From Macrostomum hystrix (lineage: Eukaryota > Animalia > Platyhelminthes): a stretch of 64,000 bases of DNA. Both the position numbers and the translations under genes were made by a program. The stretch is from positions 7,502,001-7,566,000 of the forward strand of contig CATNEN010000002.1 of NCBI GenBank assembly GCA_950097015.1, read 5' to 3'. Positions 374 to 6,010 of the stretch are shown here, one piece after another (within the stretch, counting starts at the first letter, position 1; every line of letters begins with the position of its first letter). The notes under the pieces were generated by a model. That model was not told the DNA's origin and did no database searches. It worked only from the letters and a program-made list of their open reading frames with translations.

Positions 374-1149
374 CAATCAGAGCTCCGCTGTGCCGTCTTG
401 GGTTTCTGAGTATGATGAGGCTGCTGAGCAAGCTTCTGCTGCAAAGACAGCAGCTGCAGTATCCGCGGAGACGGTCGAACAACAATTGGCAGCTCAACAT
501 ATCCGAATGGACCTGACTTTGCTGTTTTGTTCAGTTTTTCTGAGGCCGGATGCGGCGGCGGTGGCGGCGTTTGCGGAGCGGTAGGCGTGGAACGGCAATC
601 GATCATGGATTCCGTCAGAGCTGCCACAGCTTCGGGACCTGCCATTAGGGGACAAGTGGGCATTTATGGACCAATGGGATTATAGACATCGCAAGCGGGA
701 AAAACTGGAGAAAATTTCAATCGCCGAAGCCACCATCCACCCACCTTCCTCCTCGCTGTTGCTGCTTTCATCGTCCGTGTCAGCGGCAGATCCGCCAGCT
801 CTGGCCACCCGTTCGATGACCGCAGCCAGGCCGGCTGCAATCTCCATGCCCTTCGTACCCAACTTCACTGGCCTCTTCTTTGTCTTCTTTTTGATTTCTT
901 CTTTTGGCAACAGCTTTTTCTCCATCTGCAGCATCTGCCTGTACATTAGCGCCTCGGTCTTGGTTGGAAATGGGCCCTTGGTATTGCTAGTGTCACAGTT
1001 TATATAAGCTGGCTGTGCATATGGATTGTCTAGACGAAGGTCCACCAAAACATTCAGATCCTGCTCAGAGGCTGAGTGGATGATTTTCTCTATGCGCTTC
1101 AGCATGTCTAAAAAATGTGGCATCTTTGCTTCTAGTCTGTAATGACGAG
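374..1149 (-). CDS. Two internal coding exons of an unidentified minus-strand gene (about 745-1149 and 374-638)
   Basis: Acceptor tttgcag precedes 1149. The frame reads RHYRLEAKMPHFLDMLKRIEK...DTDDESSNSEEE to donor GTGGGT at 744. Acceptor ctaatggcag precedes 638 and the phase-1 join continues GPEAVAALTESM... No family recognised; other exons unresolved. Confidence 0.55.
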
Positions 1150-1393
1150 CTGCAAACAGGAATTATTAGTTTTAGATTTCTTGGCAAATTTATGTCATGC
1201 AACTATTAAGTTGGCTAAATATACTTGTTCTATGATTAGATAGGCATTTATGGACTGAACAGCCACCTGTATTGTGTATTAATTTTGTAATGCTATACAT
1301 ATATAATAAGTGTGTAATATGCCTATTTAAGAACTAATAATCTTAAAAGGTAATTGAAGGTAAACACCAACATGTAGTTGCTTATTTAGTTAT

Positions 1394-1430
1394 GCCAATG
1401 CATTTCGACCTAACAGGTCATCTTCAGGGC
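1394..1430 (-). ncRNA. Minimal type I hammerhead ribozyme (Penelope type)
   Basis: Minus strand reads GCC-CUGAAGA-U-GACC(UGUUA)GGUC-GAA-AUGCAU-U-GGC. This gives the conserved core, helix II, palindromic helix III, an AUU cleavage triplet and helix I GCC/GGC. Confidence 0.75.
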
Positions 1431-1573
1431 TTTAACAAATAGCAGAGAGTCACACACAGCCAAATATATTTAGATGAACAAAACTGTACAATTCTGAGTG
1501 AGCATTTCAATCCAGTCCAGTTTTGTTCATCTAAATATATTTGGCTGTGTGTGACTCTCTGCTATTTGTTAAA

Positions 1574-1610
1574 GCCCTGAAGATGACCTGTTAGGTCGAA
1601 ATGCATCAGC
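1574..1610 (+). ncRNA. Second minimal hammerhead copy (helix I mismatch)
   Basis: Plus strand reads GCC-CUGAAGA-U-GACC(UGUUA)GGUC-GAA-AUGCAU-C-AGC. Cleavage triplet is AUC, with a C-A mismatch at the first pair of helix I. Confidence 0.6.
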
Positions 1611-3689
1611 ATAACTAAATAAACAACTATGTTTTGCTTTTTAAATAATTTCTCAGATAGTAATTTCATTTTTATAGGCTATATACCTTTACAAATAAAT
1701 TATCTGGTAAAGTACATATATATGAGAATAGGTCATTCCAAATAAACAAGATAGATTAGGGAAATGAATAAAGCATCGAGACTACAAATACTATTTACTA
1801 AATGTCTTAATCTTTTCTGTAATAGAGCTATATATGAATAAGAAATATATTGATGCCAACATTTTGTGCTTTCTCAGCCTCTCAACATTTCACTTCTTTT
1901 AGTTATAATTTTTTTTATTTAAATTTGCTTGTCCCTATTAAATATTAAAACAAAATCTGAATTACTCAAATCAAAGTAAAAACACCAAAAATAGCCTAAA
2001 TAAATTTAAACCATCCAACTGACTAAAGGCTATTTAAAATCAATTCCATTTTTTACTATCTGAAGCTATGTCTACTTGTACAAACATATATTAATATAAG
2101 AACATTGTTTTATTGAAACTTCAATTAGGCCTACCTAGACTTTGCATGGTTTTAATTTACCACTTGTCTTTTTCATATTTGCTAAACTTGTATTGCTATC
2201 AGTCAATGCACAACAGCATTTTTGTAGAACCAGACAATTAAGTATCTTGTCCACTACTAGACTAACTTTTTAGTTAGGCTTTTTACCAAAATGGGTGTAC
2301 GGTCATTTCATTTGCCACCTTCTTGTCTGCAGACAGACAAAATGACTATTTTTCCTAGCATTCTAACAAATTATAAATTATAAGACATTTATATAACTTT
2401 TAATATGAAGCTTGATGACATAATTATTTATTCTAACTAATGCCTACATTAGCAGATGAATGGACTATGACATATATTAACAGACAAAATGACAATATTG
2501 AATACTGGCAGATGAAAAGGGGGCAGAAAAAATGACTGTCAACCCTAAAATGTATTATATATATAGGCCTATTTATAACTGTAAGTATGGGTCTAGTAAT
2601 AAGGCCTATATTGCTATAACACATTAAACATTTTAATTGAAATGATTAGGTCTATGTCTACTAGAAATCTAAATACAAAAAATAATTTGAATATAAATAT
2701 GTAAATGTAGCTTTCTAAAGAATCAGAATGTTCAATGCAATGCAGTTTTGTAAGGGAAAAGGCTTCCAAATTACCTTTGTAGGTTTGAAATGAAGGTGAT
2801 TCTTATAAATTCTGTTGCTTTAAAACAATAATTTGCTGTCTTTTTTATAAATATGAATGTGATATTTAAATATTCTCTTGCCTTTAAACTAGACAGAGAA
2901 TTTAGAATTTGCTGTCTGTGTCTTTCTTCTGAAGACAGTTCTAATTGAAATTCAAAAGCACCAGTTATGATTTAATGTGAAAAATAAGGCCCCTAACTGG
3001 AACTTATTCAAATACCCGACAGAATTACTATTAGGCCTTATAATTAGAAAATACTACATGGAAATTTATAGGATATCTCTTGTAAAGCAATCTCCTGGTT
3101 CCGAAGGTCACATGGGTCCCACGTGCCTGTTGAAATTATTTTTTAACCCCTGTGCCCCTCACTGAATGTTTGAAATAGACGAACGACCCACAGCCTTTTA
3201 CCAAGCAAAGTCTTCGAGGTTCGCGAAGCCGCATGGTTTATAATCTTTGTTGAAATAGTTAGATTTTGCTCATGTTTAAATTGGAATAAAGAAAAAATTG
3301 TAAACACAATTAGGCTGCTAAAATAATGGCTAAAAGACCGAGAGTTTCAGGCAATACAATAAAATAAGTGGACGATAAAATAGCTCCATTTGCACAAATT
3401 AAAGATAAAAACCTTAAATATTACATATTGTGCGTTTAGATTGGTGGGCCATTAAAACGTTTCTTCGAAATTAACGTGAAACATCGGAAAATTTGCGAAT
3501 CTTTCGTAGAAGTTCAACTGGGCATTAGCAATTTTTTAATTTTAATTATTACAATGTAAACAGGTTACAGTTTTTTATTTTAAATGTCGATATTGAAATC
3601 GAAATCAAAATACCATACATGAATCAAAATACCATATGTAGCCTAGTAGTTTACTTCGATATTTATTTTTTTATTAATTTACACTCCGG

Positions 3690-4680
3690 TGCAAATATGC
3701 CGCAATCTCCGGGCAATGTTGGTCACCAGGCCAGTGCTCGTCTGGAGGTAAGTACGGTGAGCCGCGCCCTGCTGTTGCCTGTGTGCGTCTGCTAACTGTG
3801 GCAGGACAGGAAGTCGGCGAGGACATCGAAGCCCCAGGCGTCGCATCGGCGTCGTCGGGAACCCAATCGGTGTGGACGACTGAAAGGCCGCCTCCGTCGA
3901 GCTGCTGGCAATGCAGAACTGCCGGCCCATGCCTCTCTCCGGCTCTACCGGGTGGCGCCGGGGACCGTTTGACTCACCAAAAAATCGGGTCCCAGCTGTG
4001 ACAAATCGTGCGTTAAAGCTAGCTACGTTCAACTGCCGAACTCTTAAATCAACCTGACGCAGGGGCATGCTCGCGCAACTGGCCACTGACCTGCAGCTGG
4101 ACCTGGTCATGCTGCAAGAGGTATCAGTCGAGGCGTGGCGAGTCCCGAGGGTCGCCACTGAGGTGGCCCGCGTGATGAACGGCGTCTTGGCAGGAGGTTC
4201 TGCGCCCCCGCGAGTGGACTTTCGCCCACATCGTCGGAATCCCGAAGACGCCGGGAACCACACGGATGGAGGAATGTCGCGGGATTTCGCTTATGTCCTG
4301 TGCCGCGAAGCTGTTCAACCTGATGCTTTTAGTACGGTTACAGCCTGTGCTGGACCCGTACCTGCGGTACGAACAGAACGGGTTCCGGCCCCACCGCAGC
4401 ACAGTGACGCAAATCCTGGCCCTCCACCGCGTCATCGAAGAAGCGCGCATCCACCAGTTAATCCTGGTTGCTCTTTTCGTGGACTTTCGCCTGGCTTTCG
4501 ACTCGGTGGTACGTGACGCGCTGCCCCTGTTGCTCCGGGCCTACAATGTGCCGCAGCAGCTCATTACCGCCATCATGGCGCTGTACATGGACACCATCGC
4601 TGCGGTAGTGACGCCAGACGGCATGTCGGACCAGTTCAGCAAGACCTCCGGAGTTCTGCAGGGAGAAAGGCTCGCGCCAA
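3690..4680 (+). mobile_element. Decayed, internally deleted non-LTR retrotransposon (RTE-like; APE endonuclease start + partial RT)
   Basis: KLATFNCRTL...LDLVMLQE (APE N-terminus, with an in-frame TGA) joins directly to pre-RT sequence EWTFAHIVGIPK..CRGISLMSCAAKLFN..EQNGFRPHRST..FVDFRLAFDSV..SGVLQG. There is a frameshift near 4210, and the RT stops before the YADD motif. Confidence 0.9.
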
Positions 4681-6010
4681 AGGGAGGAGGGGTGGGGGCG
4701 CGTGACACTTAGGAGAGTCATAAATCATGTGGAAGGGACGGAGGTGGGCGCATTCTGGCAGGAAAAAGACACAAAAAGATGGTTTACGATCGAGAAGGGT
4801 TTTGACATCTCAAGGTCACAGACGATGAGTCATCGGGGGGGAGAGAAGGGAAGGGGAAGGGAAGGGACGCAGGGAAAGCAGGGAACGCAGGGAAGCTATC
4901 CTAAAAACTTTTATGCCCCCCCTGCAGTCGCTGTTAAATCATAATAGTTAAATTATTCACTTTCTATACTGTTAAAGTATTGTTATGTTTTACAGGTTGG
5001 ATCTATAGCTCGATCCGCAGCTTTCACGCATGCAGTGCTCACTTTCTGAGCAATGCTATTATTGTACAGCGCCCAGCTGTCTCGAGTGATCGACCGAGTG
5101 CACTTGCATGAAAACTGATTGCTAAGAGACCTGCTGCTGCAACTGCTGCAACGAGGATGCAAGTCAAGGTATAATACACGCAGTTTGTCCTCTCGCTACC
5201 TGTCGCTCAATCCTTAGTCCTCTACAATGCGCCATTATTTGCAAAGAACTAACAACAGCCATCCAGCTTGGCGGGAGTGAAAGAACAGAGAGGAGGGGGT
5301 TGGTGGCGATGGAGTGACTCTGGGACACAGTCCTCGCGGGAGCTGAAAGGACAAATGCCTGAATTTTTTTCTGGGATTTTGTCCGCAATAAGCTTCTCAA
5401 ATGAGGAGTGTTTTCTGGATGCAGCTACTGCATTGGTGGGATCAGCCTCGTTCTGAAAAAATTCCCTCGCTCCCTATTCCCACGATACCAATGCAGCGAA
5501 TGCCAAGCAGACGACCAGCTGGCCGGAGGGCTTCTGGAGACTTTGCAGCTGCGGACTTTGCTCGGGGGACGAGTTTTAGGATACGGGATGAGTTTGAGTT
5601 GGTGGGATCTCGGGAGGTTTGAGGAGGCGACGCTGCGGCTTCCAGCTGTGTTTCTTTTGTCTTCCCGGTCGCCGTGGCAACCAGAAATATTTCCTTCCAA
5701 CAGTCTTCGCTATTTGCCTCGTCTTTAGTCCTCGACCCACCAGCCGCCCCATGCCTCCTGTTAGCAGCTACATTTAGCTTCTCACAAATTTATCGACTGA
5801 TTCCTTCGCCAATTCCTGCTCTTCACTGGCCTAACAGGTTCGCCTGCACCGCAGACACCCTGCAAATCCATCGCTATCCATTGATTACTCACGATCAGCA
5901 GCAGAAGCAGCAAATACAGACGGCTGCCTAAGTGGAGCATCTTCTGGTTGTCTGAGATCTTTTAGCAACAAATCATGGTAGACACTGCTGAAAACACAGC
6001 TCGTGCCGCC

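Follow-up and report, generated by a model that had tools for sequence, protein, structure and literature searches.

A palindrome with a minimal hammerhead motif in each arm as the probable relic of a single Penelope-like retrotransposon insertion

How does a near-perfect palindrome come to carry a hammerhead ribozyme motif on each of its two strands? Such a locus lies near the start of the window, the whole 64-kb stretch of Macrostomum hystrix DNA that was analysed. The original prediction took it for a non-autonomous fold-back derivative of a Penelope-like element (PLE). We consider it very likely that positions 1343-1639 are what remains after one insertion event of a Penelope-like retrotransposon (here family A), which left twin truncated copies.

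Anatomy of the inverted repeat

In a comparison of the sequence with itself the arms of the inverted repeat are 129 nt long, 93% complementary, and 25 nt apart. Within the narrower limits of the original prediction (1375-1486 and 1518-1629), the 112-nt arms have exactly three mismatches, at 1607, 1608, and 1623, and are separated by a spacer of 31 nt, as had been described. The alignment to the family A copies C9, C1, and C33 crosses this spacer and continues to about 1520, and its outward limit is 1343. The following features were assigned:

1343..1520, minus strand: PLE copy, the 5'-truncated 3' end of family A, ~178 nt (alignment with C9, C1, and C33)
1518..1639, plus strand: PLE copy, the 5'-truncated 3' end of family A, ~122 nt (family alignment)
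1394..1430, minus strand: minimal type I hammerhead of the minus copy, core 1397-1427, H17 is U at 1397, site AUU
1574..1610, plus strand: minimal type I hammerhead of the plus copy, core 1577-1607, H17 is C at 1607, site AUC
1518..1520, no strand: junction of both truncated 5' ends (both copies aligned to longer family A copies)
1361..1643, no strand: inverted repeat by self-comparison, arms 1361-1489 and 1515-1643

In the minus copy ~90 nt from the end of the 3' UTR are retained together with the hammerhead, and behind the cleavage site follows a tail of 51 nt, which terminates with ...CCTTTTAA at 1343. The outer end of the plus copy is uncertain (1629 to ~1650) because its last bases diverge from the family sequence. 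At the junction, CAG/CTG can be assigned to either copy, which corresponds to a microhomology of 0-3 nt. The apparent "loop" of 25-31 nt can be read from the alignment as what the minus copy, the longer of the two, has in excess at its 5' end. Each arm has its nearest relative in the other, with 97.2% identity over 109 nt and three common variants that are absent from all other family A copies. The locus contains neither an ORF nor any 5' part of the element. Its target is AT-rich, and a clear target-site duplication was not found; only a loose AATAAT is present on either side (1336-1341 and 1644-1649), which is unconvincing.

The hammerhead motif and its parent elements

Both arms read CUGAAGA-U-GACC-UGUUA-GGUC-GAA-AUGCAU-H, as had been claimed, and thereby contain the conserved core C3 U4 G5 A6 N7 G8 A9 ... 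G12 A13 A14 ... A15.1-U16.1, H17. Helix II is GACC/GGUC with G10.1-C11.1 as closing pair, helix III is the 6-nt palindrome AUGCAU, and an extra U follows A9 in both arms, as in published minimal hammerhead ribozymes of PLEs. The two copies differ in the way that the original prediction had described. In the minus copy AUU is followed by GGC and helix I (GCC/GGC) is intact, and in the plus copy AUC is followed by AGC, where the A at 1608 breaks the pair 2.1-1.1 by a C-A mismatch. The mismatches at H17 and 1.1 can be attributed, from the family sequence, to the decay of one CpG, which is read as TG in one arm and as CA in the second. A functional reading of their placement is not needed, given that the family sequence there is CpG. 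A relaxed hammerhead pattern matched only these two sites in the 64-kb window, with 0.03 matches expected from shuffles.

The search with the Rfam hammerhead models, which had been proposed as a check, did not report either site. There was no match to any Rfam model in the whole window at the gathering threshold and none to the hammerhead models in a stretch of 401 nt at E<=10, and RF00163 gave 31.4 bits solely on a different repeat family of the same genome. The missing Rfam match reflects how far the curated models reach, and a match to them does not define the class. When the isolated motif was folded thermodynamically as a dimer, alternative pairings came out in place of the textbook dimer, and the calculation is therefore uninformative. 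Published minimal PLE hammerheads cleave weakly in vitro, either as dimers or together with the protein of the element (PMC4209133, PMC11167929). By its sequence, the PLE hammerhead would likewise be expected to work as a dimer or assisted by protein.

Is the motif part of the parent elements? In the genome the exact motif was found 34 times against no match in the control. Among these 34 copies H17, which was left free in the search, is C, U, or A. In no fewer than seven PLE families of this genome the motif follows RT/GIY-YIG ORFs at a distance of ~200 nt, which is the linkage that the original prediction had suggested to look for. In 12 of the 18 3' flanks of other PLE ORFs the motif is found 195-263 nt into the fetched flank (~165-235 nt beyond the ORF end), on the sense strand in these 12 and antisense in none. 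The core is the same in family B, and loop 2 is different. There, the motif is located ~155 nt past the stop of an ORF that encodes the YVDD motif of a reverse transcriptase and a GIY-YIG domain, of which Pfam reports GIY-YIG above the cut-off (E=6.8e-6) and RVT_1 below it (E=6e-5). Such a single ORF, with a reverse transcriptase and a GIY-YIG endonuclease C-terminal to it, is what is expected of an EN+ PLE. Family A is related, and its longer copies (L026, L005, and L015) have a GIY-YIG coding region upstream with a protein identity of 63-74%. None of the family A copies seen is full-length and has a reverse-transcriptase domain; those that bear GIY-YIG are truncated. Family C has open frames of 666 and 750 aa, which belong to one head-to-head pair, and the genome contains apparently intact PLEs. 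A whole-genome Pfam search for GIY-YIG, which is too insensitive for PLE endonucleases, gave four weak matches, none of them adjoining the motifs.

The 5' truncation points differ between copies. The 3' ends are also alternative and comprise a short form, a long form, and the long form with an additional tail of ~23-27 nt. Such a 3' "tail", optional in families A and B, is a hallmark of PLEs (PMC11167929). Sequence downstream of the ribozyme cut site is retained, and the uncleaved RNA therefore was the template. Among the exact-pattern matches (~100 listed sites) there is a single same-strand motif pair within 6 kb (C8, 5.8 kb apart), and a direct pLTR-ORF-pLTR arrangement was not seen for families A and B.

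The helices covary between the families. In an alignment of the hammerheads of seven families 90% of the cells are paired compared to 24-34% in slid controls, both sides have changed in six of the eleven pairs, and the covariation score of 0.476 (0.107 for shuffles) was reached by 0 of 500. The other families have GUCC/GGAC, GCAC/GUGC, GGCUAG/UUAGCC, GCACG/CGUGC, or GUCCG/UGGAC as helix II, with changes on both sides in three of the four pairs, and AAGCUU or ACGCGU as helix III, where it has to be considered that the search patterns partly imposed the pairing of helix II, G10.1-C11.1, and the A.GC.U frame, and that the scans demanded at least 4 bp with G...C ends. The features without pattern bias are limited to helix I, the pair 15.2-16.2, the extra U, and the placement with respect to the ORFs. 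Helix I, which no search pattern imposed, is short (3-4 bp) and covaries, with CG, AU, or GC at 2.2-1.2 and GC, UA, or AU at 2.3-1.3. The pair 15.2-16.2 is formed in 15 of 15 sequences by three types of pairs.

The hammerhead-like core could in principle be a chance resemblance within an ordinary repeat. The missing Rfam match would fit this, as would the very short helix I (3 bp and the extension) and helix III, which has a single base pair in the monomer. However, the wider PLE-type pattern gave 125 matches in the genome and none in the reversed-pattern control, and the motif has a fixed position and strand relative to the PLE ORFs in seven families. In addition, there are compensatory changes in helices I, II, and III, position 17 is never G in the 34 copies, and all the extra traits of the published minimal PLE hammerheads are present. 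Chance resemblance is thus hardly conceivable. Judged from the sequences, the parent PLEs possess a genuine hammerhead that is under selection, of the minimal type I with the extra U, G10.1-C11.1, and a palindromic helix III. The class assignment of the original prediction is accordingly well supported by the ORF linkage, the covariation, and the genome-wide matches.

Origin and possible function of the palindrome

Throughout the genome at least 16 pairs of motifs are found within 5 kb of each other, and all of them have the order (-,+) and none the order (+,-). Their arms range from ~120 nt up to near-full-length copies. The idea that inverted arrangements are a feature of PLE insertions, which the original prediction had put forward, agrees with these pairs and with published data (PMC4209133). 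A purified PLE protein cuts and extends both DNA strands in vitro (PMC11167929). At the locus described here two cDNAs would have been made from the 3' end of the element RNA, one primed from each nicked strand of the AT-rich target. Each cDNA would have halted early, after ~178 and ~122 nt, and the 5' ends of both would then have been joined in the middle of the insert at 1518-1520. The outcome would be a head-to-head pair that has the 3' ends of the element outward and reads as a palindrome. Each arm contains a hammerhead simply because the ribozyme of the PLE is situated near the 3' terminus of the element, at a distance of ~35-95 nt. Our analysis shows how the locus is built, how it is linked to PLE families, that the helices covary, and which geometry the pairs have across the genome; we infer from this that dual-strand priming generated the locus, and that it has no function and decays neutrally.

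A non-autonomous, MITE-like fold-back element that derives from a PLE and spreads as a palindromic unit would also have a long near-perfect inverted repeat, and related sequence is indeed present at ~10 places in the genome. However, the palindrome itself is unique and not repeated at any other locus of the genome. Elsewhere, family A is present as single arms, or as pairs whose spacing and truncation points are different. For example, ~370 nt separate the C39 pair, and C7 and C33 are truncated at the ribozyme or close to it. At our locus one arm has 178 nt and the other 122 nt, the "loop" is the extra sequence of the longer arm, and a TIR-plus-TSD signature was not seen. A mobile fold-back element is thus extremely unlikely. 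As both arms are 5'-truncated copies and differ in length, the locus should be a twin insertion that was dead on arrival, rather than a mobile unit. The copies might also have been inserted independently and have become adjacent by chance or by homing of one PLE into an earlier copy. The endonuclease of a PLE can cut within the sequence of the element itself, and copies are often nested or adjacent (PMC11167929). However, the two arms are closest relatives with three private variants in common and abut exactly at their truncated 5' ends. Independent insertions would also not yield the invariant (-,+) order of at least 16 pairs, and we regard them as very improbable.

The locus could furthermore be a functional hairpin RNA locus, which would be either a siRNA- or miRNA-like source or a self-masking conditional ribozyme that regulates the neighbour on the minus strand. 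The hairpin would be highly stable. Folding predictions suggest that read-through RNA from either strand would form a near-perfect hairpin of 130 bp that buries the ribozyme, with -199 and -205 kcal/mol for the two strands and z of about -29, as the original prediction had expected. The ribozyme is always in the later-made arm of the hairpin and should therefore be masked. The original prediction placed the locus probably in an intron of the minus-strand gene. Near the locus there is a single candidate exon (minus strand, ATG at 1123), and the locus is 220-516 nt upstream of its start codon; in the corresponding ORF (683-1123, minus strand) neither Pfam nor Atlas recognised a family. In addition, the 401-nt stretch resembles long miRNA precursor models of Rfam at E<=10. 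These matches are all far below the gathering scores (MIR6140 with 91.4 compared to 140 bits, mir-3149 with 46.1 compared to 100, mir-1277 with 41.3 compared to 81, and mir-649 with 30.5 compared to 100). They stem from the generic shape of a long hairpin, and a miRNA identity was rejected. The structure is fully accounted for as a by-product of insertion, which recurs at no fewer than 16 loci and with arms of arbitrary length, and the differences between the arms, including the lost CpG at the cleavage site, resemble neutral decay. A functional hairpin RNA locus is very unlikely. The same holds for the more elaborate possibility that the element was inserted into the promoter, outron, or 5' intron of the minus-strand gene and is transcribed as a 130-bp hairpin, which would feed RNAi and silence the PLE family or modulate the neighbour, and whose masked ribozyme would be freed only on unwinding. 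In summary, the PLE ribozyme, the inverted insertion, and the burial of the ribozyme were retained from the original interpretation, and the fold-back element was not.

Comparison with known systems

This type of locus has been known since 2014, and it is an ordinary truncated inverted PLE insertion with a standard minimal hammerhead. By itself it is of little importance. The PLE families with cleanly covarying hammerheads, at least seven, allow the minimal PLE ribozyme to be compared within a compact set. The pairs of the same geometry, at least 16, include stubs of 120 nt as well as near-full-length copies with long open frames (666 and 750 aa), and they are genomic support for the dual-strand priming that was seen in vitro in 2024. 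Both are of modest value.

In the flatworm Schistosoma mansoni dual hammerhead motifs 100-700 bp apart on opposite strands have been reported, and most copies of the minimal PLE hammerheads are solitary truncated motifs (PMC4209133). The hammerheads described here share with the metazoan ones (Cervera & De la Pena 2014, PMC4209133) the type I topology, the short helix I, the unpaired nucleotide between A9 and 10.1, the G10.1-C11.1 pair, the palindromic helix III, which points to action as a dimer, and the placement within the terminal repeat region of elements with RT and GIY-YIG. They differ in that helix II has 4-6 bp, compared to 7-8 bp in the main S. mansoni families, and in that helix III is a full 6-nt A-N-G-C-N'-U palindrome. 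The flatworm host is a different one, with ~125 motifs compared to thousands. Retrozymes and Sm-alpha-type repeats are also non-coding, have type I hammerheads, and are tied to the PLE machinery. However, they are direct tandem or SINE-like units able to give circular or unit-length RNAs, whereas the inverted pair at our locus cannot release a unit via two same-strand cuts.

Twin priming of L1 (LINE-1 5' inversion) similarly involves two primings on opposite strands and inverted segments that are joined at microhomology. There, different and consecutive parts of one RNA are copied, which results in an inversion and not in a palindrome, whereas both arms at our locus copy the same 3' end. The outward 3' ends and inward 5' truncations correspond to the dual-strand target-primed integration of PLEs with internal initiation and an optional "tail" (Frangieh et al. 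2024, PMC11167929), where they would be expected if cDNA is primed by both nicked strands. The alternative 3' ends, the AT-rich target, and the retained sequence behind the ribozyme cut site are shared as well. Those data were obtained in vitro with the lizard Poseidon element, whereas our evidence consists of genomic footprints, from which we infer the second-strand joining.

Anatomy of the palindrome

A repeat search of the window returned an inverted repeat with arms at 1361-1489 and 1515-1643 (129 nt, 93% complementary). Compared by script within the narrower limits of the original prediction (1375-1486 and 1518-1629), the arms differ at three positions only (1607, 1608 and 1623) and are separated by the 31-nt spacer. 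The hammerhead sequence CUGAAGA-U-GACC-UGUUA-GGUC-GAA-AUGCAU-H is present in both arms. In the minus copy it ends in AUU and continues with GGC, which closes helix I (GCC/GGC), and in the plus copy it ends in AUC and continues with AGC. The initial observation is confirmed in every detail, and a relaxed hammerhead pattern matched these two sites only in the 64-kb window, against 0.03 matches expected from shuffles. The features are:

1343 to about 1520, minus strand: longer copy of a Penelope-like element (PLE), family A
1394-1430, minus strand: hammerhead motif of the longer copy
About 1518 to 1629-1639, plus strand: shorter family A copy
1574-1610, plus strand: hammerhead motif of the shorter copy

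The window arms were aligned with the other family A copies. The minus-sense copy runs through the spacer of the palindrome and extends outward to 1343, where it terminates in ...CCTTTTAA, the usual long 3' end of family A. The plus-sense copy follows the family sequence except for its last bases, which depart from it and resemble the copy on contig C7. Because the minus-sense copy spans the spacer and the plus-sense copy begins near 1518, the palindrome consists of two 5'-truncated copies, one of about 178 nt and the other of about 122 nt, which abut at 1518-1520. A CAG/CTG there can be assigned to either copy, and the loop is no more than the part by which one copy exceeds the other. The arms are 97.2% identical over 109 nt compared to 86-95% identity to other family A copies, and they share three variants that are absent from all of these. 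Being each other's closest relatives with private variants in common, they point to a single source and a single event. Both H17, the nucleotide 5' of the cleavage site, and position 1.1 indeed differ between the arms, as had been claimed. However, two of the three arm differences fall within one CpG, which is TG in one arm and CA in the other, and H17/1.1 is C-G in four of eight family A copies. This reads as ordinary transition decay of one dinucleotide and not as a designed asymmetry of the ribozymes.

The hammerhead motif and the elements carrying it

In the genome assembly (220 Mb, 42 contigs), the exact motif has 34 matches and a wider, family-wide pattern 125, while the reversed-pattern controls gave none in either case. 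A probe for Alu repeats had no match, and the contig is not regarded as human. The 34 copies split into two repeat families:

Family A: loop 2 UGUUA, about 10 copies, window included
Family B: loop 2 GAUUGU, about 25 copies

PLEs are defined by a reverse transcriptase combined with a C-terminal GIY-YIG endonuclease. In the aligned family B loci the motif is located about 155 nt 3' of the stop codon of an ORF containing ...YVDD... and further on ...SYIGKTKRHLYTRVREH...NILEAMYIKAQKPYLN, in which Pfam recognises GIY-YIG above the cut-off (E=6.8e-6) and RVT_1 below its cut-off (E=6e-5). The proposed linkage of family A to Penelope-like ORFs holds as well, because its longer copies (the genome stretches L026, L005 and L015) contain a GIY-YIG coding region 5' of the motif. 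As the encoded protein is 63-74% identical to that of family B, family A is a PLE lineage sister to it. Many further PLE ORFs, with 41-65% identity, were recovered when the genome was searched at the protein level. One stretch (G000:C8:2490200-2499400) contains near-full-length PLEs in head-to-head orientation, whose open frames (666 and 750 aa) both have a hammerhead motif 3' of them, its helix III being AAGCUU; the two copies may have been active recently. At another locus (L042:17-280), the open frame preceding a family B copy begins with ~89 codons of a different, commoner repeat (~90% identity, some 50 genome places), so that this copy is 5'-truncated and abuts or lies inside the other repeat.

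Counting against a ribozyme, the Rfam hammerhead models reported neither window site at the gathering threshold, nor did they when a 401-nt stretch was searched at E<=10. Across the 3' ends of 18 further PLE ORFs, about 600 nt each were sampled, and in 12 of these flanks a hammerhead-type motif is found at a distance of 195-263 nt from the start of the flank (~165-235 nt beyond the ORF end), always in sense and never in antisense orientation. The helices vary between families:

Helix variants among the PLE hammerhead families
Helix I: GCC/GGC, UGC/GCA, AAC/GUU, others
Helix II: GACC/GGUC, GUCC/GGAC, GCAC/GUGC, GCACG/CGUGC, GUCCG/UGGAC, GGCUAG/UUAGCC
Helix III: AUGCAU, AAGCUU, ACGCGU

In an alignment of 15 sequences, 90.3% of the cells paired in the named structure are complementary compared to 24-34% with the partners slid, both partners have changed in six of the 11 pairs, and the covariation score is 0.476 compared to 0.107 in shuffles, none of 500 reaching this value. 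Helix II, its G...C ends and the A.GC.U frame are partly imposed, because the scans required them (helix II of at least 4 bp). Helix I, pair 15.2-16.2 and the invariant extra U are free of this bias, as are the constant position and orientation of the motif with respect to the ORFs, and all of these support the fold. Position 17 was left free in the search, and in the 34 copies it is U, C or A but never G. A different hammerhead family, found at G000:C25:3259671-3260049 and eight other places, matches Rfam Hammerhead_1 with 31.4 bits (threshold 34 bits); its nine copies score identically, and two are in direct orientation 336 nt apart.

Origin of the head-to-head pairs

The original prediction regarded the palindrome as a non-autonomous fold-back derivative. 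In such a mobile unit the junction should recur, but the window junction is repeated in none of the other family A loci, which are single arms or pairs differing in spacing and truncation points:

C39: pair, about 370 nt apart
C7: copy cut at the ribozyme
C33: copy cut 13 nt before the ribozyme

The fold-back reading is therefore very unlikely. Among the matches listed, together with two pairs found separately, at least 16 motif pairs are not more than 5 kb apart, and all are (-,+) with the 5' ends meeting and the 3' ends outward. There are no (+,-) pairs among them, and only one same-strand pair within 6 kb among the matches listed. Arm lengths range from ~120 nt to ~2.4 kb. This geometry would be generated if each nicked target strand primed cDNA synthesis from the 3' end of the element RNA and the two cDNAs grew toward each other. 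In vitro, a purified PLE protein was shown to cut and extend both DNA strands, to initiate reverse transcription at internal sites, accounting for the optional 30-40-bp tail, to prefer AT-rich targets, and to copy mostly uncleaved RNA (Frangieh et al. 2024, PMC11167929). All these features fit the M. hystrix data. Families A and B both have a shorter end and an optional tail of similar sequence, the sequence 3' of the cleavage site is kept in the copies, and the flanks are AT-rich (GC 0.38). A convincing target-site duplication was not found at the window locus. We infer dual priming as its origin. About 15 nt before the truncated 5' end of a solo family B copy is an inverted stub of that copy's own 3' end (L030:869-911, 43 nt). 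This is the twin geometry in extreme form, with one arm too short to hold the ribozyme.

Transcripts, surroundings and known systems

On either strand, 1343-1643 is predicted to fold into a near-perfect hairpin (-199.2 and -204.6 kcal/mol, z about -29). With the copies arranged head-to-head, a read-through transcript always has the sense ribozyme in its downstream arm, and since the complement of the ribozyme is made before it appears, the motif should be masked within the hairpin on both strands. The claim of a locked ribozyme is thus sound as a structural prediction. A use of it is not indicated. The pair is a recurrent by-product of insertion, is decaying, and matches miRNA models only far below threshold. 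These sub-threshold precursor matches, the only Rfam hits at E<=10 on 401 nt, are caused by the long hairpin, and a miRNA precursor was dismissed.

The nearest candidate first coding exon is at 745-1123 on the minus strand (ATG at 1123, acceptor-like sites at ~1149-1155, donor-like GT at ~745); no Pfam family matches it, and its neighbours in the Atlas are weak. The twin insert is 220-516 nt upstream of this ATG and could be part of a 5' intron, outron or promoter-proximal region of a candidate minus-strand gene. Elsewhere, 4266-4712 (plus strand) is a non-LTR (LINE-type) reverse transcriptase fragment (Pfam RVT_1, E=3.8e-13) beside ORFs at 3679-4516 without family match, and at 6200-62700, through almost the whole window, there is a succession of over 40 different minisatellite arrays (TRF; periods 15-40 nt, 0.2-3 kb each, each with its own unit), with GC skew swinging strongly between arrays.

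By itself the window locus is of low interest. It belongs to a known class, inverted twin PLE insertions that are truncated and carry the PLE minimal hammerhead. Across the genome, the seven PLE families with covarying hammerheads and the uniform (-,+) geometry of the pairs are useful support for published models and do not constitute a new system. Every emergent trait catalogued for metazoan PLE minimal hammerheads (Cervera & De la Pena 2014, PMC4209133) is also found in the M. hystrix motifs, and dual minimal hammerheads on opposite strands, ~100-700 bp apart, are known from Schistosoma mansoni (PMC4209133).
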